DNA from: Blastocystis sp. Blastoise | Lineage: Eukaryota; Protista; Bigyra: Opalinata | Reading direction: 5' to 3' | DNA length: 64,000 nt | Assembly (NCBI GenBank): GCA_039096225.1 | Contig: JBBPEB010000021.1 | Location: 868,001 to 932,000 of the forward strand | Shown: in pieces, positions 25,550 through 50,999 of the stretch | Position numbering within the stretch: the stretch's first letter is position 1 | How the letters are laid out: each line of letters opens with the position of its first letter | The notes under the pieces: model-generated | The model's database searches: none | What the model saw: the letters and a program-made list of their open reading frames with translations, nothing else | Told to the model about the DNA's origin: nothing | Position numbers and translations under genes: made by a program

Positions 25550-26000
25550 CAGCCCCTTCCCTTGTCACTGGACGGAATTGCCATATGGCAATTGTCACAA
25601 AATTTTCTGACAAAAAAGTGACAATTGCTTATAACTTTTTTGTTTTTCTTTTTAAAAATATAAAAAAAATATTTTCGAACTCAGCTCATCAAGACACGTC
25701 GATTTACACACTTTTCATGAAAAAAGGACCGGGTGACATAAAAAAGACAATTCATTCATTGACTATTATATTATGACATGACAGTTTTTGACAAAAAACA
25801 CATTATTCTAGTATATAATGTATGACCATTTGAAAATAAGTCAAATAAAACGTTTTTTGTGACACATGTTGTGACAGATACATGACTGAAAAGGTTATAA
25901 CTCATTAAATAACAGCAAGTATAAGTTTAATATGTGACTATTTGTGTTAAGTTGGGTGGCAAATAAAAATTATTTTGTGACAAAAGTCAATTGCTAAATA
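25550..26000. repeat. Left TIR and subterminal motif field (GTCACAA/TGTGAC motifs, palindrome AATTGCCATATGGCAATT)
   Basis: Perfect palindrome 25576-25593; TGGCAATTGTCACAAAA is also present at 56729-56745; many TGAC/GTCA motifs. Confidence 0.8.
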
Positions 26001-26471
26001 TATTTTGTTGTAGGTTATGTTAAAGAGTTTTATTTATGTTTATAATGAATAATATTGTCAATAAACTCTAAAATAATATTATAAAAAATAATAATGTAAT
26101 TAAAAAGTTTTTATTTTTGTTAAATATCATGAAAGAGTCTTGTAGGGACTCTGTAGATATACCCTGACTAGTAATAAAAAATAAATAAACAAAAAACATA
26201 TTAAAATATTTTTTTTTATAACCAAACAAAAAACAACAATATGAACAAAAGTTGGATTTTAAAAAACAATACTTCCAACAAAATTATTTTTAATAGTCTT
26301 ATAAAATGGTTTTAAAATGTATTTTATATGAAGAATAAGTCACACAACATATTTATAATATTTATATTATAAAATATATTGTTTTTATTTTAAAAAGAGA
26401 AAAATAAAAAAACGATTAGTAGTCACTTGTTTTATAATTATTGTATCATTAAATGCCAAAATAAATAAGGA

Positions 26472-26549
26472 AGTTGTTTGGTCGAATGGTTAGTGCGAAT
26501 AAAATTTTTACATGGTCGACGGATCGATGCTTACAAGGAACTATTTTTT
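26472..26549 (+). pseudogene. Degenerate tRNA-derived / Pol III unit
   Basis: A-box-like TGGTCGAATGGT, B-box-like GGATCGATGC, partial acceptor pairing, T6 run; no clean anticodon arm. Confidence 0.5.
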
Positions 26550-26837
26550 AAACTTTTTGTTTTGACTGCTATTTATTAATGATTTAATTTAAAAATCAGC
26601 TTTGTTTATATTTTTATTATTTGTAAACATGATTTAAATCATTGATGTCTGCTTTTTAGTTTAGAATCAACACATCAACGAAGAATCTCTTTACAAAAAT
26701 TAGTAAATTATATTTTAAAGCAATTCTAAGTATGTATAAGTTCTGTAAACGTAATAAAAGGCCGTAAATATTAAAATTGAGGATTTCAACTATGCTCAAG
26801 CTTATTATGTATAGTTTAGTGAAAAATAAAATTGAGA

Positions 26838-26915
26838 AAACATTTGGTGCAGTTGACCAGCGGTGCAAATATTAGGTGAGTTGTTGCTGGATCGAATCTC
26901 ACATCGGGCATTTTT
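26838..26915 (+). pseudogene. Degenerate tRNA-derived / Pol III unit
   Basis: A-box-like TGGTGCAGTTGA, B-box-like GGATCGAATC, T5 run; stems mostly lost. Confidence 0.45.
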
Positions 26916-27128
26916 ATTTTTACACTCATTTCTATTGATTTTAATATTTACGTTTTTTTAATTTTGTATTTGACTTTTTGGACATAAAAGTATGTTAGAC
27001 ATATGAACCAATATGTTTTCATTTCATTATTAAAATAAGGGACGATTTTAAAAATTTGAAGTTAATTGCCATTCATCGCTCATCCATTACCTTCAAAAAA
27101 ATGAAAGTATCACCAATCGATAGAGCGC

Positions 27129-28729
27129 ATGTTTGACACCCTAGCTGGACAAATGAGACCTATTAAAGAGGAATTAAGCAGTTCAAACGCCGTTTTAAAA
27201 CAAAAAACGGTCATTGAAATAAGATTGTTTTAATTTTTTTTTAAAGTTTTTTTACACTTTTATTTTTTCAGTAAAAATATAAATATTACCGTGAAATTTT
27301 AAAATTGTAAATTCATTCATATTATTATTTAATATATATTTCTCCATAATAAAGATGATAACAGCGTCTTTTATAATATTTTCATTACCAATATATGTTA
27401 GACAGTATATTGGTCAATCAAAAGATGAATATTATGAAGATATGAATGGTAAACATACAATAGATGATATAATTCCATCTGTTAAAGTATGTATAATTTA
27501 TATAAATATGAATAATTTATATAGAATGGACGAGCGATGAAATGTAAGGAGTACAAACGGTTTATTGATTCTTTGAAAGTGTCAAATTATAATATTATTT
27601 ATGTTATAGAAGGTATTCACATATTTATATATCATTATATTATATAGAAATTGAAAAACAACAACAAAGGTTTAATAATCTAAAAGTAAAATGCATCTCG
27701 ACATTATATTCTGGTATATATATATTGCTATTATTTATTTTATATAGATAACTCATCATTGATGAAGAGAATAGAAGTGATGAACAACAATATCACATTA
27801 TTATCAAAAGAAAATACTATTATTCAATGTAGTAATAATGGTTATATTAATGGTATATACAATATATATATCTATATGTATATCTATGTATATATAGTAT
27901 CAACTAAATCAGAGAACAGAATAATTGAAAAGTTCATGATAACTGATCCAATTGATTTAAGTGATGAAGATAATATTAAAGAAGTCCTTCCTATTTCAAA
28001 TTCAATTAAAGAAATCAAATCAAATCAAATTGATAATAGCAATGAAAAAATAATCTGTATTTATACAATAATCTGCTTATATATTTTTCTTATATTAATC
28101 ATAATAGATTACTCATTTTTCCTATATATAGTCTCTAACCAACCAAAAATTGATATTGCCAATTCTCCTTCAAAAAGAAAAGTAATTACTGATTTCTTCT
28201 GTATATACATATATTGTATTAATATATAATAAACTAATATAGCTGGTATCAGTAATCGTTCTGATTCGAATAAGCATGAAACTGACTTATCTGTTCTAGC
28301 AGCTCAGAAACTTGGTTCTTTGTCAAGGTTTATATCAGATGGCTTCTCATCATTACTAACGTCTCCAACTTCATTAATAGATGTTATAGACAAACTATAT
28401 GCAAATCTCCCAGAAAAGTATCAGTTAGAAGAGTCAATAGAGAACACATCACATATATCTAATACATCTCCTCATAATGATCAAATCGCAGTTCTTGACT
28501 CTTCTTCAAGTGTTTTTCCTTCTACACCTATTTATTTCTATCCTTTATCAACAATCCAAATAATAGTTGAAAAAAATATTCAATTATTTCAAATTATTAA
28601 TACTGTTATCAATAATAACGAAGAAACAGAAAAATGTATGATATCTATGCAAGAGAAATGGAGGAAATATGTTGAGATTCACTTGCCTGAACTTATCAAT
28701 CTTGTATCATATATTACTGATAGGAAAAA
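27129..28729 (+). CDS. Multi-exon coding region, probably the 5' half of the hAT transposase gene cut by the inner element
   Basis: GT-AG introns and open exons; the last exon (ORF 28320-28787) runs directly into the inner left terminal repeat; same strand as the transposase; start position approximate. Confidence 0.55.
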
Positions 28730-28805
28730 TGTTAGAAATACCCAGATTTCCCTATTGATTTGTATACATACCCAATTTTTTGTATGATTTGGTAGAAATA
28801 CCCAA
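28730..28805 (+). repeat. Inner left end: 3 x TG(T/G)TAGAAATACCCA-like motif, 30-bp period
   Basis: Copies at 28730, ~28760 (degenerate) and 28790. Confidence 0.8.
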
Positions 28806-30001
28806 AAGTATCTGTTAACATTTTGATTTCATTGTCCAATCGTATTAATTTATATAATAACCGTGTTTATTAGATGTATTTATAGAATTTAAATTAACAA
28901 AAAATTAAAAGAATAATTCATATTATGACGTTAGGATTTGACAATTTGATCCAATCAATCGATTTTTAAGTTTCTATTAGAAGTTCGTTTATTGTACTAT
29001 ATAATTCTAAGAATTTGCTTTTTGGCAATTTTATCTATTTTTCTTTATTTATATTTATGTCTTATTTTAACTAATATATATATTTATTTTGTTATATACC
29101 TTGTATTTATACTATTAATTCAATAAAATAACAATATAGACAAGGAATATAACATAATTGTCTGTAATTGTTTTAAAAAATAAGCTTGACAGACAAATAA
29201 GCCATAAACAGCTATGAAATAAACCTGATTAAAAAAGATAACATAGAATTACGTTATATAACATACTTTTAATTTACTGACAAATTAATTAATTCAATGA
29301 ATATTTTATATAAGACCTATATATTTATATTATATAAGTTTATAAATATTATAAAGATGTTTTTAGAAAATAGAACTTATTTTTTGATAATTAGCAGATT
29401 TCTTGATTCTTTGTTTTTTCATATATACTATTACAATGTCATAGTTACATTGTTTAAAGACAAATACATAAATATTAATCTCAAATAACTGTTTTAAGAG
29501 TATGAACTGTGAATTGATTAAGAAAAATATTTAATAGATGACGAGATTCAAGTTAAAACGTTTTGTTTAATATATGGTATTAGTTTCTCGATGTTATATC
29601 AAAAGGATAGATAGTTTTATAATGGATCAAGTAAATGTCGAAATGGAAAATGTTGTTTAAAAATCATGAATGTGTATGTATTGTGTTTGGTTGCTTATAT
29701 TGAGCATACTGACCAGAATTCAGTTTAAAATAATAAACTACAGTCGTTAAAGTATTAATGATTGCTGAATATACTCTGTATTTGAGTATATTTTGAAAAT
29801 AAAAAATGAATCTAAGTTTTAAAACTGTATTTAACTCAATTCTAACATATTTTGAATAAGATACACTGTTGAGAATAAAGCAGATTACAACTCATTTCAG
29901 AAACTGTGGGTTTTCAAAATATGAAGAGCTATAAAACGTCTGATATATATATTGATGAGCGTAAATATAGTTTGAAATTAAATCTTTATTAAATAAAATG
30001 T

Positions 30002-30080
<79 letters not shown>

Positions 30081-30085
30081 AATAA

Positions 30086-30151
30086 CTTATGTCAGGATTT
30101 GAACCTGATTGCTACCTAATTATGATAGCCTCTCACCTTATAGAGCATAAG
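30086..30151 (-). ncRNA. Non-canonical tRNA-like RNA, type A copy 1
   Basis: Minus strand CTTATG-CTCT ataaggtg AGAG-GCTATC ataatta GGTAGC-aa-TCAGG ttcaaat CCTGA-CATAAG. Confidence 0.8.
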
Positions 30152-30399
30152 AGTAATAATAATAATAATAATAAAATATGTAATATTTAATATATATATA
30201 TATATATATATATGGTATAAAAAATGTATACTTTTATTTTTCATATAAATTTATCAAATAGAATTTATATTATAGTTGCTTATATATATATATATTTATA
30301 AATAAATAATAGATCATTTTAAAATATATAAAATAGATATATAAATAAGAAGTATATAAATTAATGAAATAATAAGTATAAATAAAGAAATAATAAGGA

Positions 30400-32700
30400 A
30401 GAATCCTTTTACAATAAATAATAAAAAATAAATATAATATTTAAAAGTATATAGATAGAATTAATCAAATAGGAGAGAAGTATATATATATAGATATAAA
30501 AGATAATAAAAGATAAGAATTGAATATAAAAAATAATGAAGACAAGAATAAAAAGAAATAGGTTAACAAATGAGAAGAAGAAGGAGTTAGTTAAAAGGAT
30601 AGAGAGTAAAGAATAAATATAAGGAAGAAGAAGAAAAAGAGAAAGCACATATTGAAAATAAGATAAGAAGGTAAAAAGAAAAGAAAGAAATATGGATAAT
30701 AAAAAAGTATCTATAAGAGAAGAAGAAAAGAAGATAGACACTAGAGTTAGAAGAAGAACTAGGGAGAATAAATTAAGTAGAAAATAAAAATATGAAGAGA
30801 GTACACATAGAAAATATAAGTGAAGACGTAGAAGAAAAGATAGAATATGATGAAAGAAAAAGAGTATAAAAGTTTAAAAAAATATGTATACATATAAATG
30901 AGATTATGTGTAATAAATCTAGAAAATATTGAGATAAAAAGGAAGGAGATGAAAAGGAATAAAATGAGAATAATATAAAAAGAAGAGAAGGAGAAGATTT
31001 AAAATGAAGATGTGGAAGAAGAATGAGAAGAATGATATATAGAAGATATAAAAAGAGAAGAAGCAGAAGATATAGAAAAACGATAAATAAAATAAGAAGA
31101 GAAATATAGAGAGAATGAGATTGAGAAGGAAAGGAAGGAAATAAAGGATATAAAAGAGAAGGGACTAAGAAGAAGGATATTTAGAAGATCTATAAGAAGA
31201 AGAAGAAGAAGGAGAAGTAGAAGGAGAAGAAGAAGGAGAAGGAGAAGAAGAAGAAGAAGAAGAAAGATGAGGGAAATAAGGATATGCAGAAGAAAAAGGG
31301 GAAGGCCATATAGTAGATATAGAAAGAGGAGAAGGATAAATAGAAGGATATAGAGAGAAAAGGATAGAGAAGAAGAAGAAGAAGATAGAGAGAATAATAT
31401 ATAGAAGAAGAAGAATGAAGTGAAGTGAGGAGATTGAGAAGAAAAAGAAACAGAAAAAATAATGATATATAGAAGAAGAAAGAGATGAAAAATAAATAAG
31501 AGAAGAAGGAAAATCAAAAAAAAAGAATGAGAAGAAGATACAGAAGAATAAGGAGAATAAGATATATCGAGGAAGAAGGAGTATGAGGATGTATAGAAGA
31601 AGAAAGATGAATAGAAGATATAGAAGAAAAAGATGGAGACAAACGACAGAAGAAGAAGATACAATAGAATATACTAGAAAAAAATATATAAATAGAAGAT
31701 ATAGAAGAAGAAAGATAATAAGAAAAAAAGGAGATATGCAAAAAGAATGACAAATAGAAGATATAGAAGAAGAATAAGGAGATATAGATGATATAGAAAG
31801 AAAATGATATAGAGAAAATACAGAAAGAAAATATAAATAAACAGAAAAAATGTGAAAGAGAGAATATATAGAAGAAGACATAGAAGAAGGATATATAGAA
31901 TAAGAATATATAAAAGATATATAGAAGAAAAAGGAAATATAGAAAATATAGAAAGTCAATAAGGATATAATGAAGACGAAAGAGAAGGAGAATAATTATA
32001 TATAGAAGAAGAAGAGATACAGAAGGAGATAGTGAGGAATAAAAGAAATATACACGAAGATATAGAAGAAAAATGATAAGAAGAAGAAAAACGAGAAGAG
32101 AAAGAGTAAAGAAACAGAGAATAATTATATATAGAAGAAGAAGGAATGTAGAAAGAGTGTGTAGATAAAGAATTAAAAGAAATAGAGTATAGAAAAAGTA
32201 AAAGTGGAAGGAAATGAGAAAGGAAGTAATAGTAAAAGAATGAAATGAAGAAGAAAAAGAGAAGAAGAAAAGCAGAAGAAGAAACAAAAGAAGAAGAAGA
32301 ATAGGATAAAGTAATGGAAATGAAGAGAGTATGTAATTATAGGAGAAGAAGAACCAGTAATAATTAATGGAGGAAAGATGAAAGAGAAGGAAAAACTAGA
32401 ATATAATATAAAAGAGCATAAAATAAAACATACTATAAAGTAGTATTAGGAATAACTCTAACTGTCTATATAACATAAGAGTATAAGAATATAAAATGAA
32501 TAAAAACTAAAAGAGAATATAGAATTGAAGAGTGAAGGTGAGAAGAATGTCAATACAGGACAAGAGGAGAAAATAAAAATCAAAAAGCAACTATATACAT
32601 AGAAATAACGTTAGTAATATATCTATATAAACAATGATAATAAAAAGAAAATAATACATATAATAAGTCAATAATAAGAGGTGTTGTAGATAAACATAAT
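30400..32700. other. Purine-rich, C-depleted (plus strand) low-complexity tract, cassette copy 1
   Basis: GAA/AGA/ATA-dominated with internal repeats such as GAGAATAATTATATATAGAAGAAGAAG. Confidence 0.8.
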
Positions 32701-34323
32701 AAAAATAATATAAATATGAATAAAACATATGCTTAATAACTAATAAGTTTATATCATATAAGTATATATAAATATAAACATATATATATATATATTACAT
32801 GAAAAAAAAAGATAATGTTATTGTAATAAGACAAGAACTATATATAGAATTATAATAATAACATGTATAGATAATATATAGTATTAAAATAATTATTATG
32901 AAGAAAAATAATATAGAAAATATATATATCTACTGATTTGAAAATATATTTAGCTATGTGACTCAAAAAGACAAATCTAAATAGAGAATAAAGTATATTA
33001 ACTGAAGAAATATACTCTTTTAATGTTTGAGAACCAATCTGTTTAGCTAATTAGCCAATTATTTTTTTTAAATCTTTAAAACTCACTCATCTGACACAGC
33101 TAACAAATTCAGACTCACTGAGAAAGCCTAAAGAAACATTTTTATATGGTGACGTCACATCATCCCATTTATAACCATAAGACAATAGCTGATCATCTAA
33201 CTTAACCATTTTACATCACCTATATAAGCTTATAATAGAGAAAGAGAACATACCACCTTAGATCAATCTGCCAATGGAGACTGGAAGGTACTCTACTATA
33301 CTCCTAGGGCCTATATATAGATAGATATATGCTTAGAACATACAAAAACGAAATTAATCATATTTTATATATGATTATCGAAACTTCACTATAAATTAAC
33401 TTATTAAATTTTATTGAAATCTAAATATTTCTACTTTTTATTATTTATTATTTAATTTAAATACTTTAAACCGTTATTCTTACTCCTGATGTCTTCTTGT
33501 TGTTGATGGAGTATGTAATTATGTAAATAAAAATAGTTAATTGATTAATTATTTATAGAGTGTTACATAAAACAAAATTGATGATTCAAGTCATGAGAAA
33601 ATCACTAGACTTGATGAAGGCAAGAAGAATTAGTCAATTATATGATAGTCACTAGATTGCCTAAATGTGTAGAACTGTCAGAAAAGGTGAGTTTGTGTGT
33701 GTTTAAATTTAAATTCAACATTAGTTTGAATACGTATTTCACTAATTAATTCAATTTTAGAGAAGTTACAAACAGAATTAATTTTTCTCCGTGATATGTT
33801 GAGTTAGAATGCATTTATTCTGACATTCTGCTAATAATTTAAATTTAATTATGACCTATATAAGCCAAAGTTAATTATAATAGTTTTCTAGGTAATGTAG
33901 ATTTGTCAAGGTTCTTTAAAAGTCTCAAGAGTGGTTTATAAATGTTACAAATGACTTTTAGTGTCAATTATATTAATATAAACAGTTGAAATGTTTTTTA
34001 AGAGTATAGACAAAGAATGCATTGCGTGTTTATAGACTTCAAGGTGTTATTGATAAATATTTATTTTTTATTTGTGTGTAGAATTGATTAGAAGAATGAT
34101 TAACAAAATAAATTATTGAATAGAAAATTATAGGTGAATGTAATTATGAATGTGTTTGGTTTTAAGTAAAGGTATTTAAAAACAATATAGAAGAGCGACT
34201 AACGATGTATAGAGTTTATTCAATTACATGAAACTCAATGTATCAATTCATACTGGTTCTAATGAATGAGAATATCTATAGAGAAAAATATTTAAATTTT
34301 AATGAAAAAAATATAATATATGA

Positions 34324-34391
34324 CCCTAGATCAGGAATTGAACCTGATAACAATCTATTAATGATTGCTACTAACCATATTCAGTCTAAGG
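34324..34391 (-). ncRNA. Non-canonical tRNA-like RNA, type B copy 1
   Basis: Minus strand CCTTAGA-CTGA atatgg TTAG-t-AGCAATC attaata GATTGTT-a-TCAGG ttcaatt CCTGA-TCTAGGG. Confidence 0.85.
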
Positions 34392-34454
34392 AGTATTAAT
34401 TATATGAATATAACCATATATATATATATGTTTAACAGACAAAACCCCAAAATA

Positions 34455-34500
<46 letters not shown>

Positions 34501-34777
34501 AAGAGTTGTATCACCATTATTTGTAATAATTTATATAAGCTGATTATAGACTATATATATATATATAATGAATGAATAAGATGACATGAATTAATTAAGG
34601 GAATAACAAGTCTATATATATATGAATATATACATATATGTAATTATGAAAAATATATATATATATAAAGTAAAAAAAAATATATTTAAATATAACATAG
34701 GAACATATTATGTATATGTATTAAAACAATGAAAATACATACTCTTTACGTAGAATCTATTTAATATCTTCACACAC

Positions 34778-34809
<32 letters not shown>

Positions 34810-35499
34810 TAAAGTAGTGAGTATAAATGTATTTAATAGAAATGAAAGTTGGAAAACATAAAGTAAAGGATATATATATATATATATACAAGAAAATAAG
34901 GTTTAACATAATACAAAAGTAAATCATTCAAAACAATTATATATATATCCTTAATCCTATATATAATAAAATTGATATAAATATAATATTATAAACAAAA
35001 AGAGATATAGTAATATATAATAAAGTGTATATATAATTATTATCAAAATAAATACATAACTATATATAAAAGGAGCCAAATTGAATTTATATATATTATT
35101 ATAGTATATATACTACATAATTGAGCAAAAGAAATAAAAGAAAGAACTATTACCTTTTCTATATATATGTATAATTAGCTAAAAAAATATATTATAAAAA
35201 AGTAATATATAATATAGATATAGAAAAATAAAGTGATATAAAGAATTAAATGGAAGAATAATTATATAAAAGATTAAGTATACAAAATGTTTTCTTTTAT
35301 ATCATAAAAGAAAAATGTATTATAAATATAATCAGATGAAAAAACTATATATATAAAACATGAGATACATGAAAAGATGGCTTATACATTTCTATCATAC
35401 TATATATAATATATACTATCTACACCTATAGAATTATATATATAAGTCTTTAATTATATATGCATATATAATAAGTATATATAAAATATATATAATATA

Positions 35500-35647
35500 T
35501 ATATATAATAAGTATATATAAAAAAATATATAATATATTTATATATACCTTAAATAAATAATAGTAATGTAGTAGAAGAACTAAAGACCATCTATATATA
35601 GATTATTCTTCATTATTCTATTTTTTATACTTTGAATTTGATAAATA

Positions 35648-35678
<31 letters not shown>

Positions 35679-36222
35679 GTCTATATATACACTAGACATA
35701 AGACTGATTCTAGTATATGATATCAACTTCCAAAAAAGCACAAATCAATTATCTAAAGAATATATGTTAATTAAGGATATTTTCTTAAAAATATTATATA
35801 TAGTAAATATATATAAAATAATAATATAAAAAGAATATAAAAAAAAGTTGATAATATATATATATACATTTCTTTAACTAAAGCAACATTCGTATATTTA
35901 TAAAACACCTATATAACATATATATATATATAATTATAGTATTACTAATTATATTTTTATATAACTAATAAAACTATAGAGACATAAATAACATAAATAT
36001 AAACAATATGATATTATTAATAATTTTAGGTACATAATATAGAATATATATTAAATATAAAAAATATTATATGGAAAATAAAATAAGATATATAAATAAT
36101 TTGAAAGGGTATACAATAAAAATTAATTATTTATATATAAAAACTATATACGTTAGATATCAAAATTGATGTCTATGAACTTTATAATATAAGGGAAACG
36201 TCTCATTCTCTATATACAAATA

Positions 36223-36257
<35 letters not shown>

Positions 36258-37860
36258 TAAACATAAGAATATCATATATTGATAAGTAATAGAAAATTAT
36301 ATGTAAATTATATATATATATATAATATACCTTGTTACATTGTAGTATTGATGCAGAGAAGTTAATGATTACATAGATTAATAATACTATATATATGTAA
36401 GAATAAGATAAAAAATAAAGATTAAAACAGTCAATATAAAATATTTGTATATCATGTATATATAAAGTTTATATAAATTATTAAAAATTATTAATAATAA
36501 AATATTCAAGTATATAAATGAATATATCTATATAAATATACATATTAATTAGCTGATAAAAAGAAAATATTGAATGAATTTTGAATTATTTAATATCTAT
36601 ATATAAGTATAATATATATAATAAAAGAAAGAGCATATATGTATATTATAATAAATATATTACCTTTTTATATTGACTAAATAATCTAATGTGATAATGA
36701 ATACTTCTATATATAATAATATGTATAAAAGAAAAGTATATGCATATAAGAAAACTAATAGAATAATAAGAATATATATATAAACAATAATGATAATAAA
36801 TACATACTCGAACCACATATAAACGATAGAACCACAATCATAAGGAAATGAATAACTATAATATAAATTTAATTAAATAGATATATATAGTTTTAACAAT
36901 AATAATATAAATATATATATATACAATTCATAACCATTTTTCTCTGTATTTTTGTTTTACATATATAATCATATTAATTTATTCCATAGCTCTATAGAAT
37001 AGAAATAAATATTTTAAACATATATATATATACCTTTAAGGACTCAATAATAGTACTGAAATCGAAAGGTTATAGAACTCCAAAACAATAATTAATCACC
37101 ATTTCTATATAATATATATAATATATTGAAAATAATACAAATATATACTTTCAATACAAATATAAAACCATCTGAATATCACGAACGACCTAGACATTAA
37201 TTTCCTTAGTAGATGTAAACCAATTACTTTTTTCTTTTTAATAATCTCCTAAATAAATAATTAAATATAAAAATAAAAGATAAAATAACATATCACTAGA
37301 ACATACAGCAATGAATATTTTAAAAGAGGAAATGTCCATCATTCTGTCTTCTTCCAATATTGAATAAATAACGTCATCACGCTTTCTAAACCATGTTTCT
37401 AAGCCTATATAAATAATGGTAAATTAAATAAGCATATACCTAAAAGAATGAATCGTCAATTAGTTGATTACCTCGATTCATTGCAATCTTAATATATAAT
37501 AATATACATATAAAAATATAATATAAATATAAAGTATAAAATAACCCTCTAAATAAACAAATAATCCATATAATAATATATATAAAATATACTTTTTTCA
37601 GCAGTTCATTTAAGCCGATGCTGAATAGATTTTTCAAAGATTTAAGTGACTCTGAAAAACTCCAAGAATAGGGATCATATCAAAGAAGACTTTTTATCCC
37701 ATTATTTGAATCTCTAGAAATTATTTTTAAAACTTGCTCATTAAATCCCAAAGAAGTTTTTATCAAAGAGGTTGCTGCCGCTATTTAGGCTGATTTATCG
37801 CTCTCTCCATCCTCAGAATGATTTCTCGTGACATTCAAATATTGATTTTTTTCATATATT
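35500..37860 (-). pseudogene. Cargo gene X copy 1: multi-exon, in-frame stops, unknown family
   Basis: Exon-like blocks bounded by GT/AG, e.g. SA*IAAATSLIKTSLGFNEQVLKIISRDSNNGIKSLL*YDPYSWSFSESLK and GLETWFRKRDDVIYSILEEDRMMDISSFK; boundaries approximate. Confidence 0.45.
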
Positions 37861-38599
37861 ATCATTATAGACATATAAAATGAATCTATGTATGTTTTTT
37901 AGTTATAAATCTATATTTTGTATCATCTGCTGTCATCAAATATTTAATTTTATATAGTAATCAGTTGATCAATTGGTTGCTTATTGTTTACATGCTCAAA
38001 ACAAGCTTTATCTAGTTTCAAATCAACTGAAAAGGTCTTGGTGAACAATAAAGATGAATCTAAGGTATATAATTATTTTACATTTTCTTATCTTGTTTAT
38101 TCTCTGTTATATCTATTTTATTTCTATGCTATTAGTACATCTCTATTATTATCATAGCGTTGTTATGTTGTTCTAACTTAAAAACATATTTTTTACAATT
38201 GAATTACTTTACTTTTCTATTTAGTTGTTTCTCTAATATATATATACTTTAATTTATTTATTTTATTTAATTATTTAGTGAATCTTAACAAATCCAAGCA
38301 TAACCAAAACAAATTGCAATGATTCAAGTCTTTATTAAGGTATATATCTTTTAATAGTATAACTAATTTATTTTAACTGACTATTAATCTATATTTGATA
38401 TTCTTGTCTTTAAAGTTATTGTTATATTATTATTTTATTAATATTATATATTCTTTAGACTTATTGTACTTTTTATTATTTTTCTATAGAGAGTTTGGTC
38501 AGATAGTATTAATTTATGATTGAAGTTATCAGTTGCTATTCTCTTCTTTTATTTAGTTTACTATTCTTTTAAATATTATAGTCATCTTGTTTATAGAAC

Positions 38600-41500
38600 T
38601 TTATTCGCTTCTCTCTAGCACGTTCTTCTCTTAATATGCTATTTCTTCTTCATTCTTCATTCTAATTAACTTCTTACTCCATTTTTTTTTTCTTCTTTTT
38701 CATATGGATATTAGTTCTTCCTTATTCCTTTTCTTAGGTCACCTCTTCATGAATTCTACTATTATTTTGTTGTCCTTTTTATTCTTCTTCTTCTTAACCT
38801 TTTGATTCTTCTTCTTCTTTCATTCTTCTATCTTCTATCTTCTATCTTCTATCTTCTATCTTTATTATTCTTCTTTCATCTATACATCTTATTTTACTTA
38901 TAATTCCTTTCTGCTTCTCATTCTCATTATAGATTTACTTCTCATTCTCATTGTTATTGCTATTTCTTCTTTTTCTTGTCCTTCTTGTCCTTCTTGTCCT
39001 TCTTGTCCTTCTTCAACTTATTCTTAGTCCTATATTAGTCTTACTTCCTATTTTTTTCTTATTTAGTCTCTTATTTTTTCTGTTATTCAGTTTCTCCTTA
39101 TATCTCACTTTCTCCTTCTTGTTTCACGTCTCCTAATATTTTATTTTTTCTTTCTTATTTTTATTACTATCCACGTCCTACTTCTCCCTTTCCTTCATAT
39201 GCTACTTTTTCCTTCTCCGTTGCCTTCTTCGTCTTATTCAAGTTTTTGTTATACTTCCCATTCTTTTCTCATTGTAAATAACCATTTTTTTCTTCTGTTT
39301 CTTTTCAATTCTTCTTCTTCTTCTTACTCCTATTTTCTTTCTTGTTCTTGTTCTCCAATTATTAATCTTCTTCTACTTATTCTCATTCTATTTATCGTTT
39401 AATTTCGCTTTCTACTCCATATACTTATTCTCATTCTATTTTGATTTTTTCTTCCTAGTTTTCATCTAATTCTAATTCTATTTCTTATTCCTGGTGTTAT
39501 TCGTAGTTTCTTTTTAATTTCGTTCTCCTTATTAATTCACTTTCTATTTCTGTCTACTACCTATTCACCTACTTCTTCTTATTTACCTTCTACCTTTTTG
39601 TCTCATTCTCGTTATCTTTCACAATCTACTTCTATGTCTACTTTTTCTTCTTCTTATTATTATTATTCATTTCATATTCTTATTCACATTATCCTTTTAA
39701 CTATTATTCTCCTTCTACTTCTGATTCTACTTCATAATCATTTTACTTCTTATTCTCCTTCTTCTTCTTCTTCTTCTTCTTCTATAAATTATATTATCAT
39801 TGTCTTTCTCTCTCTATATTCTACTTCTGTATACTTTTTACTCATTTTCCTTTGTACATATTTCTTTGTTACTCTTATTCTTATTTTTAATAGTACTATT
39901 CTTTTTCTTCTAATTAGCCTAGTTTCTTTATCATTTTTCTTCTTCTAATTGTTATTAGTATTATGATTCTATTCCTCCATCTTCTTCTTATTTTATTTTT
40001 ACTTCTGCTTAACATACTCCTTATTCTATTCTTTGTTTTTTTTATTCATCTTCTAATTCTTCTTCTTATCATTTTCCTTCTTCTTCCTGTTTTTGTTATA
40101 ATTCTTCATCTTAGTTTTATTCAACTATTCTTATTTTCATTATTCACTCTTTCTCTTTCTCCTTGCACTTATTATTATTCTCCATCTTCTTCTTCTTCTC
40201 CTTTTTATTCTGTTTATTCTTCTTATTCTTGCTATTCTTATTTTTATTTATATTCTATTTCTTGTTTTTATTATATTATCTTTACACCTCTTTATCTTCT
40301 CCTCGTTAGTATTCTGATTTTTCAACGACTTTTTATTTTCATTCTCAATCTCATTCTACTACATATTTTCATTTCTCTTCTCCTTCTCCTATATTTGTAC
40401 TTTTGTTGTTGCCCTTATACATATGGTTCTACTTATACTTATTGTTATCATTTTTATTCTCCTTCTCCTTCTCCTTCTCCTTCTATTTCCACTTCTAAGT
40501 CTAAGTCTATTTATACATCTCTTATGCTTCTACTACTACTTTATTTGTCATGTTCTTATTCTTATTCTTATCCTTATCCTTATCCTTATCTAAATTCTTC
40601 TTATTTTACTTTCTTCTACTTGCTTGTCTAGTTCTCTTTATTCTAATGGTATGCTTCACTTTTTGTATTCTTCATATTCTTCTACTTTTACATGTTCTTT
40701 TTTCTCCAAATTAATCTCATTTTTCTTCTGCATTTCCTTTTACTTCTTATTATCTTTCTTTTTTTCCTTCTACTTTTCCTTATCTTTATTCTGGTTTTCT
40801 TCTTCTTCTTCTTGTTCCCTATCTTTTCCTTCTTCTATATCATTTCTTCTCTATATTCTCTTTTTCTTCTTCTTATTTGTATCGTCCTTCTCCTTGTTTT
40901 AATTCTTCTTGTTTTCATTCTTCTTGTTTTCACTCTTCTCATTCTATTTCTTCTTGTTTTCACTCTTCTCATTCTATTTCTTCTTTTTACAATTTCCATT
41001 CTTCTATTCTAATTCTAATTTTTCTTATTTTCATTCTGCTTCTTGTTATTCTTCATATACCTATTAATTTACTTCGAATTCTCCTTTTCATTCTATTTTT
41101 CATTATCAGGCTTATTATTGTTCTCCAACATATTTTTTCTTCAATCTCATTATCTCCTTCTGCTTCTACTTCTTATCTTCATTTTCCTCTCTCTTCCTTG
41201 TACTTCTACTTATTCTTCTTATTCTTATTCTTATTCCTATTATCTTTCCTATTTTCATTTTTTTTTATCATTCTTATTCTTATTCTTATTATCTTTCATA
41301 TTTTACTTTTTCTTATCATTCTTATTCTCAATATAATTCTCATTCTCTTTATTATACTTCTCCTTATCTTGCTACTTCAACTTCTACTTCTACTTCAACT
41401 TCTTATTCTCCTTCTATTTATATTAGTTCTATTTCCTTTCTTATTCTTCTTCTTATTTCACTTCTCATTCTTTTTCTAATTATTCTACTTCCTTTTCGTT

Positions 41501-44500
41501 TTCTTTATTCATCTCATGCTACTTCTTCTTCTTCTTCTTCTTTTCACTTTTTTGTATCATTATTATTTTCATTCCTTTCTTATTTCAATTCTAGTTCTTT
41601 TACTTGTACTTCGTCTCATTCAACTTCTTTTCCTTCGTGTCTTTATTCTTCTACTTGTAATTATAATTTTACTGTTACTTTTACTTGTACTTCTACTACT
41701 ACTACTACTTACTCTTATTCTTCTAATTCTATTTCTACTACTACTACTATTTCTACTATTTATTATCATTATTATTTTCATTCTACTTCTACTACTATTT
41801 ACTCGTATTTTTCTACTTCTATTATACTTATATATCTACTACTATTTACTCTTATTCTTATACTTCTCATTCTACTTGTACATCTACTACTACTTACATT
41901 TATACATATACGTCCACTTCTACTTTTTCTTCTACTTCTAGTTCTACTTGTACTTCTTAGTTTTCCTTCCTCTAGTTCTTATATTTCTACTTCTACTACC
42001 ACTACTTGCTATTTCTCCTTCTACTTTCAATTCTCCTTTTACTGTACTTGTACTACTATTAACTCTTATTCTTCAATTTGAACTTCTCCTTTTTTTCTTC
42101 TACTTTTTCTTTGATTCTTCTTCTAGTTCTACTATTTCTAGTTCTTCTTGTTTATCAACTTATATTCATCATTTTACATCTACTTTTACTAATACAACTT
42201 CTTATTATTATTTTTCATATTATATTCTTTTAATTCTAATTCTTATTCCTATTCTTGTCCTACTTCTATTTCTTCTTCTATTTATACTTATACTTACACT
42301 TTATTTATTCTTATTCATATTCTCTTTCTTCTTCTTCGATTTATACTATACTTATATTATTTATTCTCCTTTTTATTCTCTTATTTTCTTTATACTATAC
42401 TTCTTTTATTTATACTTATACATATTATGCTTCTCCTTCTACTTCTCCTTCTCCTTCTAAGTCTAAGTCTATTTATACTTCTACTATTACTTTCGAAGTC
42501 ATATTCTTATTCTTATTCTTATTCTTCTCCAGATTCTTCTTTTTTTTGCTTTTCTTCTACTTGTTCGCCTAGTTATTTTTATTCTATTTATACACTTCTC
42601 ATTTCTCATTCTCCGTATTCATCTACTTTACGTATTCTGTTTTATTCTAAATTCGTCTCATTTTGATTCTATTTCTTCTTCTACGTCTTATTTATATTCC
42701 TATTCTCTTTCTTATTTTCATTCTACTTTTCTTTCTGTAATTCTGTTCTTGCTCTAATTCTTCTTCTACTTTATCTTCTTCTTCTCCTTATTTCCTATCT
42801 TCTCTTTCTTCTATATCATTTTTTAGTCTATATTATGTCTTTCTTGTTATTCTTTTTATTTGAAGTATCCTTCTTTTTCTTATTTTCATTCCTGTTCTTG
42901 TTCTCATTCTTCTTATTATATTTCTTCTTTTTTACAATTCTTTTTCTCCTCACTGTAAATCTAATTTTTCTCTTTTTCCTTCTGCTTTTTCTTTTTGTGA
43001 TTCTTATTTTAATTCACATTATCCTTTTCCTTCTATTTCTCTTTATCTTCCTTATTATCGTCATTCCTATTCTTTTTCAACATTACCTTCTCCTTCTGCT
43101 TGTACTTCTTTTTTTCATTTTCCTTATACTCCTCCTTGTACTTCTAATTATCTTTCTTATTCTTATTCCTATTATCTTTCAATTCTTTCTTTTTTCTTTT
43201 ATTCTCAATCTTTTTATTATATTTCTCATTGTTTTTTTTCTTCTTCTTCTATTTATACTTGTTAAAGTTTTTCTACTTCTTATTATTCTTTTACTTCTCA
43301 TTCTATTTCTCAAGATTTTACTCCTTATTACATTTCTTTATTCATCTCATTCTCCTAATTCTTCTTCTTCTTCTTCTTCTTCTTCTTATTATTATTTTTG
43401 TTACTATTTCTCCTCACTATTATTTCTTCTTCTTCTTATACATTTCCTTCTTTTCCTTCAGCTTCTTTCATTTCTTCCTTTATTCTTATATTTCTACTTG
43501 TACTTCTACTCATATTTCTACGACTATTACTTACTCTATTCTTTTTTTTCAATTTTAACTTCTACACTACTACTAATACTACTACTAATGCTACTACTTA
43601 CTCTTCTACTTGTACTTCTGCTTGTACTTCTACTCCTATTCATACTTTTACTTCTACTACTTCTTATGCTATACATCCACTTCTATCACTACTACTACTT
43701 TTTCAACTTATTTTACTTGCACTTATGTTTCTCCTTGTTCTTCTATTTCCCTTTCTTCTTCTTGTTTTCATTCCCATTAGCATTATTGCCATTCTTCTAT
43801 TTCTTATTCTCATTCAATTTTTTATTATCAATATTTTTTCTTCTTCTTCTACTTCTTTCGTTTTGTTTCTTCTATTTCGTCTCTTTCTTTTCTATATTCT
43901 CTTTCTCTTCCTTCTTCTTTTTATGTTTCTCCTTTTCTAATTTTCTCATTCTTCTTCTTCTATTGATTTTCTTTTTCCTTTTCCTTCTCCTTCTACACTA
44001 TCTCTACTTTTGTTTCTACTACTATACTTTTATTTCTTTTTTCTTTCCTTTTACTTCAACTTATATGTCTACTTCTCTATCTCTTTTTCAATATTCTTCT
44101 TCTCATTCTTCTTATATTTATTTTTTACTTTTAGTTTTTACTTATACTTCTCATTATTCTTGTCTTTCTTCTATTTTTCTTTCTCCTTCTTCTTTTCCTT
44201 CTTCTTTTCCTTCTCTTTTTCTTCCTTCTCCTTTTTCTCCTTCTTCTCTTGTTCCTTCTTGTCCTTCTTCTATTTGTCCTTCTTGTTCTTCTTGTCATTC
44301 CTATTCTTCTTCTTCTTCTTCTTCTTCTTCTTCTTCTTCTCATTCTTCTCATTCTTCTTCATTTCATTCTTCTTATCATTTTCTTTCTCTTTCTGTTTCT
44401 TCTTCGCTTTATAATTTCACTTTTCCTTCTTCTTCTTCTCTTTCTTTTTTCCTTCATTTTTTCTCGTTCTTCTCTTTCCTCTCCTCATTCTCTTTGTCAT

Positions 44501-45050
44501 TCTTATTTTCTTATCCTTCTCCTTCTTCTTCTCCTTCTTATCTTTCTCTTTCCTATTCTCCTTTTTATTCATATTTTGCTCCTCTCCTTCTATTCTCTTT
44601 TGAGTCTCTTCTTTTTCCACTTTTATTCTCATATTTCTTCTTCTATACCCACATATTATCCCTTCTCCGTCTTCTTTTTCTATATTATCATTATACTTCT
44701 ACTTCTAATCATTCTCATTCTACTTATTCTTACCTTCTATTGATGTTTTTCTTTTTCTTCTTCTTCTTCTTCTTCTTGTCCTTTATCTTGTCCTTCTCCT
44801 TCTCACTCGTCTTATTCTTGTCCTTGTCCTTGTCCTTGTCCTTGTCCTTGTTCTTCTATATCTCCTTGTCCTTCTACTTCTACTTTTTCTCTTTCTCATT
44901 TTACTTCTGCTGCCACTTTTTTATCAACTTCTATTATCATTCTTCATCTACGTATATTACTACCACTTCTTATTATAAATTTCCTATTCCTATTATTCTA
45001 AGAATCGTTTTCTTCATTCAATTGAAGTTGAATTCTCGTTTTTTAAAACT
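38600..45050. other. 6.4-kb pyrimidine-rich, G-depleted (plus strand) low-complexity tract
   Basis: TCT/TAT/ACT triplet mosaic with dispersed repeats (CTTCTAAGTCTAAGTCTATTTATAC at ~40491 and ~42453; ATTCACATTATCCTTT at ~39682 and ~43012). Confidence 0.85.
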
Positions 45051-45255
45051 CTATACACAATATTTGATATATTGAATTATATATATATTGATATATAAAA
45101 CAATAAATAGAATTGTGTATATATGTTACTTTTATTAGTATGAAGAATAACATATATAGAAAAACATATGTATTATATATATATGAATATATATATACTT
45201 AATCGGATATATTAGAATTCTATAATATATTATAAATAAGCATATGTATAGAATG

Positions 45256-45300
<45 letters not shown>

Positions 45301-46610
45301 TGTATATGTATGTAGAATAGATATACATATGTATTGAATAGTATACATGTATACATATATATATAAATTTATATATATTAAATATTGTGTAGAAAATAGA
45401 AATTCTAATATATTAATATATTTATGTAGAATCATGTAATATATATATATATATATATATTCTTGATTAAAAATATTAATAGTTCATATGATATGTCTAA
45501 TTTGTTTTCTTTTATTCTTTCTTTTAGCACTATATATTGTTTAGTATTATCTTTTAAATCATTTAATTTATTTTTAACACTTTTTTAATAACTTATAATC
45601 TATTTTTTGCTTTTTGTTTCATTTGATATATAATATATACAAACGATTGCATTTCTATAAATATGTTATTATAAGAGTATGATTTATTTATTTAAGTTTG
45701 TTTAGAAGAGTCATGACAACAATATCTTTTGACTATCCCATCCAGAAACATCATCACCTTGGAAATCGAACATAAACGGGTAATTTGAAATGTAACATCT
45801 GTAAACAAGTCTTCTTTTTGGGGGTTTTTTGTTTTTTTATTCGATACTCTAGCTTTTACATTTATAGTAAAAACTACATTCTCTAGTTGAAACTTTTTAC
45901 ATACATAATTTTGACTCCATATGTTTTTACAGTCTCAAATTTTGTTATTTATTCACTATCTTTAAACTTATGATAGTTCACCTTAATCAAACAAAAACAT
46001 ATTTCCACTTCTGGTTGTGTCTGAACTGAATCAGTTACCAAATTATAACATAAAAATAGTCTACATGAATCTAATATTGATTTACAGATATCTTTGTTGT
46101 TAAATATGCAGTAATTAAAGCTTCAATTGTCTAAATATGTCAAAATTAAAATAAAGTATATTCTTGTGATTCTGGACAACAAATTTCATTTTTATAGTGA
46201 TTAATTAATGAAAAATCATGAAAATTTACGTTGTAGTTTTTAAAAGCTTTATTCGAGAGCAATACAATATATTATTACACTATAAATGACACTAATCAGT
46301 CGATATAAGTGTCTGCAGTATTTATACTATCCTTAATCCAAAAATTTGAGATAATTATATTTAATTTGTAAATAAAAATGCTTATCTTAAATTAAATAAC
46401 TACTTTTCTAAATTATTATAATAATCTATTAAAATATTTCTTATGTTTTAATTACTACAAAATTTTTATGTAAGCTTTAATAAAGAAAATATAAATATAT
46501 TCTTGAGTATATTTTTTCTAATAATGACAAAAGAAATAAAAAGAATTTTAATTGGCTATGAAGAATTTGTGTTTTCAAACCACCAATCGTTTAGAGTCTA
46601 AAATAAACAG

Positions 46611-46745
46611 TTGGGTATTTCTACCAATTTTGTAAAAATTTTGGGTATTTTAACAAAACTTTTGAATATTTTTGGGTATTTCTAACAATTCGATTTTTTT
46701 TTGGGTAGGTTAAAATAATTATGGTTTTTTTGGGTATTTCTAACA
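46611..46745 (-). repeat. Inner right end: 5 x TTGGGTATTTCTA(A/C)C-like motif, ~30-bp period
   Basis: Copies at ~46611, 46641, 46672, 46701 (degenerate) and 46730; ends immediately before the transposase ATG. Confidence 0.85.
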
Positions 46746-49700
46746 ATGCCTCTTACTGATAATAATCTCTTCATGGATGTTGAAGTATATAAATGCCCTG
46801 TTCTTAAGAGTCTTCTAAAACATAATAATACATATAATAAGTTTATAATTTATAATATAAACAATCAACGATGGTATTGTATTTCGTGCTTATTGTTTTC
46901 AAAAGATCCCATTATTCTTGGTGAAATCTATTCAACAACTTCTGTTAATGCTCATAAAAACTCAAAGTCACACAAAGAATCCATGAAAATGTTTAAGTCA
47001 CTACTTAATAATCTTCAAAATAATCAGACGCTTCTTATTAATAGTACTCATTCCATTTCAACAAATAACAAAAAAGTCTGGAAGTACTTTTTCATGAAAA
47101 TGTTTAACTGTATGTCTCTTTGTCTATCTAGTATCCATTCAATATATGGAGAGACAACAAGACTTACTTCTCCTCATTGTGGTATCTTTTTGAAATTGCT
47201 ACTTTTGACTGGAAAGAATGATGAGTTATTCAACACTTTTCTAAAAGAGAATCAATACATTTATCAATCTGTGAGATCCACTCAGAAGTGGATAGAATTG
47301 ATATCAAATGATCTTATGCGTTCATTAAGAAATAGAATAGGAAATAGAATATATAGTATAACAACAGATGGTACTACTTGTCATAATATTGAGCAATTGG
47401 TTGTTACTATTAGGTTTTGTAATGATAATTTTGCTGTTAATCAATATTTTCTTAGTATGATGGAAGAAACATCTCCATCTGGAGTTAAAATAGCACAAAA
47501 TATAAAAGCATGCTTAGATATGAAAGAATTAGATATAAAAGATTTATGTTCTGTGTCATATGATAATTGTATTTGCAATACCAGTAATATTTCTGGAATT
47601 GTTTCAGGATTGAAACAACCTCCTGGAACAATTTTGGGATATGGATGTCGTGCTCATCTCCTTAACTTGGCACTTCTTGACCTTCAAAATAGTACTATTG
47701 ATTCTTTTTTATATATAACGTTGATAAATGATGTTGCCGTTTCTTGGGCAAAGTGTTCAAGGCTAAGAGTTATAATTAAAAACCATAATTTCAGTAAATA
47801 TACTCTTCCTCAAGTATCACAAACAAGGTTTATTGCAAGATACTACTCTATTATCCCCTATGTTGCCCATCCAAAACAAACGTTGTGCAAAATATTTTTG
47901 CTATACTTCTATTCCTACAATAAAAAAAATGTTTGTAATAATAATTCTGAAAAAATGCTTCAGTCGTTCGGTGAGTTATCTTTTCACATTTTCCTTGAGT
48001 GTTGGTTTCGAATACTATGCGTTGTTAATCATGCATCATCACAATTGCAATCAGAGACACTAACTGTAAATGAATCCATGAAAATTATCAAAAGATTATA
48101 TAATGATATTTCTAATTTATCTTCGTCTGATAATATAACTGAAATGTATGCAAATGCTATACAACGACGTGAGTATATCTATAGTTTTTTAGATGATTTA
48201 GTCAAATGTTTTGAACGAAACAAATATGATAATACAAGTGATTATTCCATAAATAGTATATTGCAAATCATGAAAAAGATTCCTGATTATTCAAGCAAAT
48301 GGAATAAACTGTCCATGGATGAATGGAAAAATAATATTGATGTTTTGGAAGCAATTGAATGTGAGGAAGATGAATGTATTATGAAGTCCAATGATAATGA
48401 TGATGAAATAATTGAATTATATGGTAAAAATTCAGAACTTCATTCAACATTCTCTTTTACTGAGTCAATTAGATCTATTCTTAATCATAGAGATGAGGCT
48501 GAGAAGAAAAACTTTGATGAAATGTGCTTACAAAAAGGATTGAACGTGAATTCACGAAAAAGGTATGTTGAAATATGCAATATTATTTTGTTTCTCTTAA
48601 AATATTGGGAATTCATTAATATATATATATAGAACTAGACAGAATGTCTTAATCAATAGAGACAATGACTCTAATATGGCTCCAGTTATTGAAAATAGGA
48701 ACCATTTCTCTCATCCAGGTAGAAATGACAAAATCGTGTCAAATATAAATTTATTTACAGCAGAACAATATATTGATTATGTAATGAACGCTGAAATTGA
48801 AAAGAGAAATGATGGTGCTCTGTCTAGCAAAAATTGTGAAAAAAGTTTGAATATTTTACCCAAAGGTTTTCAAATTCAGGATGATGATATTTGCATTTTA
48901 TATGATTCTCTATTTCCTTCTTCAAATTCAGAAACAACAAATGCTTCTGGTTGTGCTAATAGTCAGGTTACTGAAATTCAACCAAAAAATAATTCTTGTG
49001 GTGATACTTTATTATCAATTTCTCCATTCAAAAGGTGTCGTGGAAGGCCAAGAAAGAACAGGAATGATATACAGTGTGATTCAGATTGTTTCAAAGAAAC
49101 GAATACAATAATTTCTGGTTGTAAAAGAAGTACTACTTCTTATAGTGACTTTGGCAGTAGTAACTATTCAAACAAACACGAAAAACGTTTACAAAATGAA
49201 CAAAATAAGAATATTTCAAACGATGAGAAGAAAAAAATGATCATTACTACTATTTCTTCTCAGCAATATAATATTATGTTTAAGAATGAAAAGAATAATG
49301 TATATCGTTTTTCAGCTAATTTCAATTTGATGATTCTTCAACTCAAGCAGAATTTAGCAAGTCGTCTCTTTAAGAATATCATACAAGATTTATCTATTTG
49401 CTATTTCATTTCCACAGAATTTATTCTACAAACAGAAAGTAGTTTTCAAAATGTTTTTGTTGATACTTTTTATGGTTTATTTTCTTCTCGTTTTTCTGAT
49501 AATTATTGTATAGAAATGGAAAAGATTATGTCATACTTGAAAGAAACCGCGATTCTAACGTCTTCAATTGCTTCATTAGTAGATTTAGTAAGAAATCACT
49601 TCCCAAAGTCTTACATTCTTTACAAACAAACAGTTGAGCTGTGCCTTACAATAAACCCAACCAGCATAAAGAGTGAGTCGTCGTTTAGTATTCTTAAAAG

Positions 49701-49899
49701 GGTAAAATCTTATAGTCAAAACGGAATGAAAGGAAATCTCCTTGAAGCTTATATGTCTTGCACTTGTAATGAGTGCCTTCTGTCGTCTCTTAATGCCTCT
49801 AAAATTGTTGATGATTATATGGATGGACTACACCTACAACCTTTGAGTAATACATTAATTCAAAGAGTACTTAAAACTGAACTTCTTAAAACATTATAA
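46746..49899 (+). CDS. hAT-family DDE transposase (ZnF-TTF-like, DUF4371-like core, hAT dimerisation domain); one intron 48563-48632
   Basis: WYCISCLLF zinc-finger; YSITTDGTT (D), VSYDN (D), GCRAHLLNL (CxxH), SQTRF, PTSIKSESSFSILKRVK (E); the GTATGT...ATATAG intron joins the two ORFs in frame (~1027 aa). Confidence 0.9.
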
Positions 49900-50811
49900 A
49901 TGTGAACTACTATTAGTATGGTGCATGCTGTTCATTGTAATTTATTATATATATTATATATATTTAAGTTTGATTATTCCGTATTTTTCCTTTTATAAGA
50001 GTTATATTTATTTTTTGTAATCATTATCAAGTTCTTCTATTTATTTTGTTAGGTTTTGAGTTTTTAATTCTTAAGTTTTTATCAGAATCAGTATGTGTAC
50101 AACAAATAGCATTAAATATGGCTTTTATTTTATATCTAACATTTTTTGCTATATGAAAACGCTTTAAATAAATAATTCATATAAACATATCAACAAAACA
50201 GCAAGTTAAGATTATCGGGTTCTTTCATTTTTTATACTCTTTAACATAACAGATAAACTTGTATAACAATATGTGCTTTCAAATACTTTTAAAAAGTTTC
50301 AAAATAAAAACATCATCTGTATAGAAAAAAAGATCTAAATATTACGAGATTCAAAGTCACTTCAATGAATCCGTGTAAAACAGACCATGACTCATGATAT
50401 ATGAAGAGAAGGCTAGAAATTATTGTGGATCAAGTGAATGTGGTTGGTAGTATAGTGTATTAAATTATGACCGAGATTTATAAACTGTAAAGAATAATAT
50501 TTCAAATGTAAACCATAACCCATGGCTCTGTATATGGTGTGCAAATGGTGAAGCCAAAATGTTCATTCACTTAGCTGAGAATATAATCCATTTTGATAGA
50601 AATAATTGAGATCACGTATCATAAAGAAGTTTGAAGCAATATAAATAAACCTTAAATTACTATTATGTATGAAGTACAATGAATACCTATTGATTTCAGA
50701 AACTGAATAGTACAATAACACTAGAAAACTCTATAAAACATTATCTATATATGCATAACAATGAGTGTAGTTTAAATTAAGAAATCTATATATATAATAT
50801 ATATAGAATAG

Positions 50812-50875
50812 CTTATGTCAGGAGTCGAACCTGATGGCCTTTTTGAGTATAGCCTCTCACCATATAGAGCATAAG
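50812..50875 (-). ncRNA. Non-canonical tRNA-like RNA, type A copy 2
   Basis: Minus strand CTTATG-CTCT atatggtg AGAG-GCTAT actcaaa AAGGC-ca-TCAGG ttcgact CCTGA-CATAAG. Confidence 0.8.
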
Positions 50876-50999
50876 TGATAACCAAGAAAATAATCATATG
50901 CGATATGTAAATATTAAATTGACATAAAAAACATGACATCTTATATATGAAGAACCTAAATATATATTTTATTAAAAAATATATATATAACATATAGAC

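Follow-up and report, generated by a model that had tools for sequence, protein, structure and literature searches.

A probable 18-kb non-autonomous DNA transposon nested in the transposase gene of a hAT element of Blastocystis sp. Blastoise

Here, we report an insertion of 18,030 bp that splits the transposase gene of a hAT transposon in the tortoise isolate Blastocystis sp. Blastoise (GC content, ~23%). The locus lies in a 64,000-nucleotide stretch (positions 868,001 to 932,000 of contig JBBPEB010000021.1, forward strand; GenBank assembly GCA_039096225.1), hereafter the window, to which all unprefixed positions refer; its G+C content is 20 to 29%, and its stop codons are standard. We are confident that the inserted DNA (28723 to 46752) is a single DNA transposon, non-autonomous and of the cut-and-paste type. 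The nesting is of an ordinary kind, and the family of the element has not yet been described in this organism. Tortoise Blastocystis genomes are known for low G+C content (21 to 23%), long intergenic regions, 5.6 to 7.5% transposable elements, and ~12% low-complexity DNA (PMC10690189); in the same published work, the transposons of the Blastoise genome are given just as a percentage of the genome.

The junctions were defined by a perfect 9-bp target-site duplication, TTACTGATA, which occurs just twice in the 64 kb, each copy exactly 7 nt outside a perfect inverted repeat; a 9-mer at an equal offset was common to 0.24% of random flank pairs. The empty site was read from three paralogues in the same genome (P0002, P0003, and P0004), found by word search with the downstream open reading frame (ORF). 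The two flanks, compared separately with the three paralogue loci, both cover the same TTACTGATA site. The paralogues lack the 7 nt that separate duplication and repeat on each side, which places these nucleotides within the inserted DNA. The segment 28723 to 46761, made up of the insert and one duplicate, measures 18,039 nt (3 × 6013); its removal restores the frame exactly, giving the pre-insertion reading ...SYITD/NNLFMDVEVYKCP..., which equals the paralogues in length. A first-pass annotation of this DNA had taken the TGT and ACA of the inverted repeat as the tips and, for that reason, had reported no target-site duplication and gene halves left 1 nt out of frame on excision; both statements are wrong. 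Its bounds (28728 to 46748) were 2 to 3 nt off the perfect repeat and ~5 nt off the real insertion at each end, and 7 nt of nonhost DNA lies outside TGT and ACA on each side.

All three paralogues are uninterrupted across the split, reading ...SY(I/V)(T/I)D-(D/Y)(L/H)LF(L/Y)D..., and carry the exons found here at 27.3 to 28.7 kb fused to the catalytic part, which bears out the earlier proposal that the hAT transposase gene is split and is the opposite of what the first pass had named as refuting it; a large, non-autonomous nested element, as proposed then, is likewise supported. With tblastn, residues 1 to 325 of P0003 map to 27355 to 28721 and residues 323 to 926 to 46752 to 48563; for P0002, residues 12 to 162 lie upstream of the insert and 162 to 601 downstream, and for P0004, 68 to 209 and 207 to 349, respectively. 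The 1 to 3 residues present in both halves are explained by the duplicated codons on the two sides. As read from the sequence, the cut in a predicted coding exon separates an N-terminal region of ~325 residues from the zinc-finger/catalytic part. The gene is otherwise open, with 1,027 residues downstream of the insert and one short intron in its 3′ part (48633 to 48675). The open exon entering the left end, already noted in the first pass, is an ORF at 28320 to 28787 that reads 21 codons into the insert before a stop at 28785 to 28787. At the right end, a 628-residue ORF follows, 100% identical to a protein of the Blastoise assembly, and its ATG (46746), as noted, comes directly after ACA. This ATG is not the native start of the transposase, as had been assumed: it is supplied by the right tip of the insert (ATGCCTC), and its agreement with the frame is fortuitous. 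The genome annotation takes it as the start of WA158_006253, a gene model that should be corrected, since it represents the 3′ portion of a hAT transposase broken by the insertion.

Both ends of the insert carry arrays of a phased site. The 15-mer TGTTAGAAATACCCA is exact at 28730 to 28744 (+), 46673 to 46687 (−), and 46731 to 46745 (−), with one-mismatch copies at 28790 (+) and 46612 (−), against a chance expectation of ~2e-4 per window for an exact 15-mer of such makeup (estimated from base composition). The outermost pair (28730 to 28744 and 46731 to 46745) forms the perfect 15-bp inverted repeat. The core ATACCCA recurs at 28738, 28768, and 28798 (+) and at 46612, 46642, 46673, and 46731 (−), with a degenerate unit at 46702, to make three units on the left and five on the right, spaced 29 to 31 bp apart (Tandem Repeats Finder periods, 30 and 31). 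Strong (S) and weak (W) sites alternate, as S-W-S in the left array and S-W-S-W-S in the right. The best alignment pairs the three left units with the innermost three on the right, so the right end bears two extra outer units. On the terminus and its unequal arrays of ~30-bp period, the first-pass description was correct, and the sites are now located exactly.

Two other ways of reading the ends were tried and rejected. An inside-out arrangement, with separate elements ending at ~28806 and starting at ~46609, does not agree with the perfect copies being outermost, with the duplication flanking the 18 kb, or with the paralogues joining the outer flanks. Nor do the 7-nt tips look like leftovers of an earlier 9-bp duplication (donor flank); on inspection, the overlap that they would need to share does not match.

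Outside low-complexity DNA, the nested element has no ORFs of at least 70 residues, and Pfam gave no credible match for ten higher-complexity short stop-to-stop ORFs. No recombinase or other recognizable gene was found among the nested-element ORFs searched, and an Rfam search of the element was empty both at gathering score and at E ≤ 1. GAA-rich low-complexity DNA makes up almost half of the element (tracts in Table 1), and in the ~130 kb of genome read, all but one of the strongly skewed 500-bp blocks lie within it. Long F/L/S-rich plus-strand ORFs at 38500 to 45000 lie in a pyrimidine-only strand and gave no Pfam-type matches; they are artifacts, since a pyrimidine strand cannot hold stop codons. 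Two annotated "hypothetical protein" genes, at 41516 to 42081 and 44065 to 45075 (+; 174 and 336 residues), fall wholly on this pyrimidine-only strand and are probably prediction artifacts as well.

One ~5-kb module of the interior has a diverged duplicate in the host hAT (anchors, 78 to 79% identical; flanks, z 4.5 to 13) and was not found in the further hAT copies that were compared; it may have arisen by capture, by local duplication, or as a third repeat family. Four decayed tRNA-like sequences (−), at 30084 to 30154, 34320 to 34400, 50806 to 50880, and 54860 to 54950, have the T-arm motif TCAGGTTCRAHTCCTGA in common (0.03 expected by chance). ARAGORN calls only 30084 to 30154 (Ile, aat), and Rfam calls none of the four as tRNA even at E ≤ 1.

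The interrupted element (25550 to 56761) is a complete hAT transposon, as judged from its ends, its duplication, a DUF4371/ZBED5-type core, the C..H.LNL block, and the C-terminal dimerization region together. The terminal inverted repeat (TIR), CAGCCCCTTCCCT, matches its inverted right copy (56749 to 56761) at 13/13 positions and begins with CAG, in keeping with the (C/T)A(G/A) of hAT ends; it is flanked by a perfect 8-bp duplication, ATGAAAAA, of hAT length (25542 to 25549 and 56762 to 56769). Homology between the window and the paralogue loci begins at 25550 (83% identity to locus L002 over 2.4 kb), and the left tip, CAGTGCCTTCCC, is also found at L001:8141 and L002:4775. The transposase has precomputed PF14291 and PF27073 matches and subthreshold matches to DUF4371 (E, 0.0014) and Dimer_Tnp_hAT (E, 0.002 to 0.011); its core is of the DUF4371/ZBED5 type, and the C..H.LNL block is invariant in the transposase alignment. 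A search of solved structures gave no match for the transposase or for a six-sequence profile. Both insertions, that of the hAT and that of the nested element, are probably recent, because perfect duplications and perfect terminal repeats have been kept and, apart from the insert, the hAT gene remains open. Neither the hAT ends nor the subterminal motif GCAATTGTCAC has anything in common with either end of the nested element, which was rejected as a deletion derivative of the resident hAT on account of its different termini and the lack of a shared motif.

Other hAT copies were seen at the paralogue loci. The P0003-coding copy (L001:10001 to 20230) is also disrupted, its C-terminal part being a separate gene ~4.5 kb downstream (L001:18060 to 19396), and direct repeats of ~200 bp lie at 14100 to 14330 and 20000 to 20230 of that locus. 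The paralogous copy at L002 has ~2.9 kb of extra DNA compared with the window (L002:7122 to 10001). This surplus, which begins at a long (AT)n run, separates the 5′ subterminal region from the transposase exons, and DDE_1 and DDE_3 transposase genes lie near it in a transposon-rich region.

Table 1. Positions of the nested element, its parts, and the host hAT in the window
Feature	Position (strand)	Remarks
Left copy of 9-bp target-site duplication	28714..28722	TTACTGATA
Right copy of 9-bp target-site duplication	46753..46761	TTACTGATA
Nested element, probably non-autonomous	28723..46752	18,030 bp; bounded by the duplication; empty site from paralogues
Left 7-nt tip GGAAAAA	28723..28729 (+)	Not host sequence; absent from paralogue empty sites
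Right 7-nt tip ATGCCTC	46746..46752 (+)	Not host sequence; absent from paralogue empty sites; source of the WA158_006253 start ATG
Left end array, three units	28730..28804 (+)	28730 perfect; 28760, 11/15; 28790, 14/15
Right end array, five units	46612..46745 (−)	46731 perfect; 46702, 9/15; 46673 perfect; 46642, 11/15 (14/15 with one gap); 46612, 14/15
GAA-rich degenerate low-complexity tract	30500..32500 (+)	~2 kb; purines 79 to 86% on the + strand
GAA-rich degenerate low-complexity tract	38500..45000 (−)	~6.5 kb; purine-rich on the − strand
~5-kb module: pseudo-tRNA A, GAA-rich tract, pseudo-tRNA B	29500..34700 (+)	Collinear with 50240 to 55300 in the 3′ noncoding part of the host hAT
Host hAT transposon	25550..56761 (+)	31,212 bp; 13,182 bp excluding the insert; TIR, duplication, and transposase
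5′ exons of hAT transposase gene	27355..28722 (+)	From tblastn; ~325 N-terminal residues
3′ part of hAT transposase gene	46753..49899 (+)	Zinc-finger-like region, DUF4371/RNase-H-like core, C-terminal hAT dimerization region

In established transposon biology, a duplication, terminal site, and phased repeats of this kind mark integration by a DDE transposase. Here, the clean staggered-cut duplication, the perfect terminal inverted site, and the phased repeats at both ends argue for integration by such an enzyme acting in trans. The insertion left the 9-bp staggered-cut duplication TTACTGATA, and a transposase supplied in trans may bind the phased 15-bp sites, pair the ends, and cut 7 nt outside the outermost site. 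The GAA-rich interior would then be cargo or the product of later microsatellite growth and not functional sequence. As for family, the analogy with published elements inclines us slightly toward a Mutator/Foldback-type "sub-TIR" element, which would probably be mobilized by an enzyme of the Mutator-like element (MULE) type. The duplication falls within the 8 to 11 bp (usually 9) of "sub-TIR" elements, the tandem ends are composite and unequal, and 7-nt motifs stand between duplication and repeat.

Several observations weigh against this account. The two 7-nt tips are complementary at just 2/7 positions and are only candidates for conserved motifs. A single copy was seen, the end motif being absent from the ~67 kb of other Blastocystis DNA compared, which includes the three paralogue loci (L001 to L003), and no partner transposase was identified. 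Beyond the arrays (~90 to 150 bp), no inverted homology rose above shuffles in the 1.2 kb beside each end: with the arrays excluded, the inverted alignment scored 162, compared with a shuffle mean of 150 and maximum of 178, and the direct orientation scored 170. Inverted BLAST matches between the arms were ~65% identical, of low complexity, and without a preferred diagonal. The arms mirror each other in composition only, which is not the pattern of a long-armed Foldback; a classical Foldback, in which long homologous arms run inward from the tips in inverted orientation, was rejected. Finally, we estimate the chances as roughly even that the 9-bp match is a true 8-bp duplication with one chance base added, which would suit a hAT-type enzyme.

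If just 8 bp of the duplication are genuine, the nested element could belong, as a non-autonomous copy, to another hAT-like family, its phased subterminal sites being Ac/Ds-style binding sites; this reading, drawn from analogy, is possible, though doubtful. hAT elements with perfect 8-bp duplications are active in this genome, hAT ends such as those of Ac/Ds typically carry repeated subterminal binding motifs, and one extra chance base is estimated to be likely in a genome of 77% A+T. However, neither 8-bp register yields a (C/T)A(G/A)NG tip, whereas the resident hAT has CAG, and the tips are noncomplementary over 7 nt and the ends unlike those of the resident hAT. The TGT and ACA of the outermost perfect site, together with unequal site numbers as in Mu and Tn7, had suggested a Mu-, Tn7-, or Ginger-like element. 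That affiliation is scarcely credible in a eukaryotic host with 7 nt of insert-derived DNA beyond the TGT and ACA: target-site duplications are 5 bp in Mu and Tn7 and 4 bp in Ginger, and the one seen here is 9 bp (or 8 plus a chance match), outside the 3 to 5 bp that the comparison would call for.

The first-pass annotation had also raised the idea that the insert serves as a switch, controlling the hAT transposase through programmed excision or inversion. Removal of the element and one duplicate does restore the frame, and the rest of the gene is open; however, the frame would be restored after any recent insertion with a duplication. The absence of a recombinase or recognizable gene among the ORFs searched inside, the low complexity of half of the 18 kb, the paralogues without a comparable insert, and junctions like those of a plain cut-and-paste insertion make a switch extremely improbable, and inversion would not join gene halves that already have the same orientation. 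Capture at a double-strand break or segmental duplication, with the arrays incidental, would account for noncomplementary tips and for the homology of the ~5-kb inner module to DNA 20 kb away in the host hAT. It is nonetheless very unlikely, because a transposase signature is seen, namely, a clean 9-bp duplication whose two copies each stand 7 nt from a perfect 15-bp repeat that has phased copies at both ends, and elements with the same geometry of tip and duplication have been published (PMC3169594).

Further copies of the nested element were sought more widely. An exact two-site pattern had no match in metagenomes. A looser pattern gave 16 metagenome loci and 4 prokaryote-genome loci, all of them unrelated tandem repeats with different flanks and a higher GC content, with one exception as to GC: a 27-bp tandem repeat at L020:12380 to 12749 (metagenome contig Ga0257124_1001531; GC content, 25%) includes GTTAGAAATACCCAA, a sequence that matches the element's site exactly. 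This repeat lies at the end of a gene-dense contig and looks coding, and its identity was taken as coincidence. A full-text literature search for the end motif gave no match.

The locus is a record of recent transposition in a Blastocystis lineage that is newly sequenced and very AT-rich. Should further copies exist, the Foldback-like "sub-TIR" architecture would be extended to stramenopiles, and transposon cargo might tie in with the spread of low-complexity DNA. A more far-reaching version of our preferred reading, which we consider unlikely, is that the nested element is the first member seen of an undescribed, still-active Foldback-like stramenopile family whose transposase reads 15-bp sites every three helical turns, cuts a fixed 7 nt outside the last of them, and could move 18 kb of mostly strand-asymmetric GAA-rich cargo. 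Were this true, the family could be one vehicle for the ~12% low-complexity DNA that separates tortoise from human Blastocystis isolates.

Three further features of the window lie outside the two transposons. Two are neighboring host genes: at 17913 to 21689 (−), an ORF of 1,258 residues carries a hormone-receptor (HRM) domain, and at 1050 to 1700 (−), another carries a DIX domain; both are unrelated to the insertion. A genuine tRNA-Leu(taa) lies at 57092 to 57175 (+; Rfam, 53.8 bits), 330 bp past the right end of the host hAT.

Drosophila Foldback elements have a 9-bp duplication, ends built of tandem subrepeats (~31 bp), unequal arms, and usually no gene, and they carry large inserts. The nested element resembles them in its 9-bp duplication, subrepeat ends, and unequal arms, but Foldback has long homologous inverted repeats starting from the tips, whereas here the arms past ~150 bp mirror only a purine/pyrimidine bias. 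With non-autonomous Ac/Ds-type hAT elements, it has in common a short terminal repeat with repeated subterminal motifs, predicted mobilization in trans, and possibly an 8-bp duplication; it differs in the lack of a CAG/TAG-type tip, in an apparent duplication of 9 bp, and in ends unrelated to the hAT at the locus. Mu and Tn7 likewise have phased sites, here predicted to bind a transposase, that are unequal in number at the two ends, and the outermost site here is bounded by TGT and ACA; their duplications are 5 bp, however, their termini lie exactly at a conserved dinucleotide, and they are prokaryotic.

The closest parallels are among MULEs and related elements. MULEs have 8- to 11-bp duplications and long inverted repeats (PMC6446971). 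Like MULEs and Pack-MULEs, the nested element has a duplication in the range of 8 to 11 bp, terminal regions of at least 100 bp, and tips starting with G, and the non-autonomous copies of that group carry foreign DNA (PMC6446971); unlike them, its inverted similarity is limited to phased sites (90 to 150 bp), it has no MURA-type gene, and its interior is mostly low-complexity DNA, not gene fragments. Tm1 of root-knot nematodes (Meloidogyne) has 9-bp duplications and asymmetric 7-bp terminal motifs inside the duplication and outside the inverted repeat; its ends consist of tandem units unequal in number, most copies are noncoding, nested insertions are common, and an autonomous member codes for a Phantom-like MULE transposase (PMC3169594). 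Tm1 differs in having units of 13 to 15 bp, compared with 15-bp sites every ~30 bp here, in its length of ~1 to 2.6 kb, compared with 18 kb, in its nematode instead of stramenopile host, in the lack of any sequence similarity, and in its Phantom-like transposase, none being linked to the nested element. The two nevertheless agree in the 9-bp duplication, the 7-bp tips outside the repeat, the unequal ends of tandem units, and the noncoding interior.

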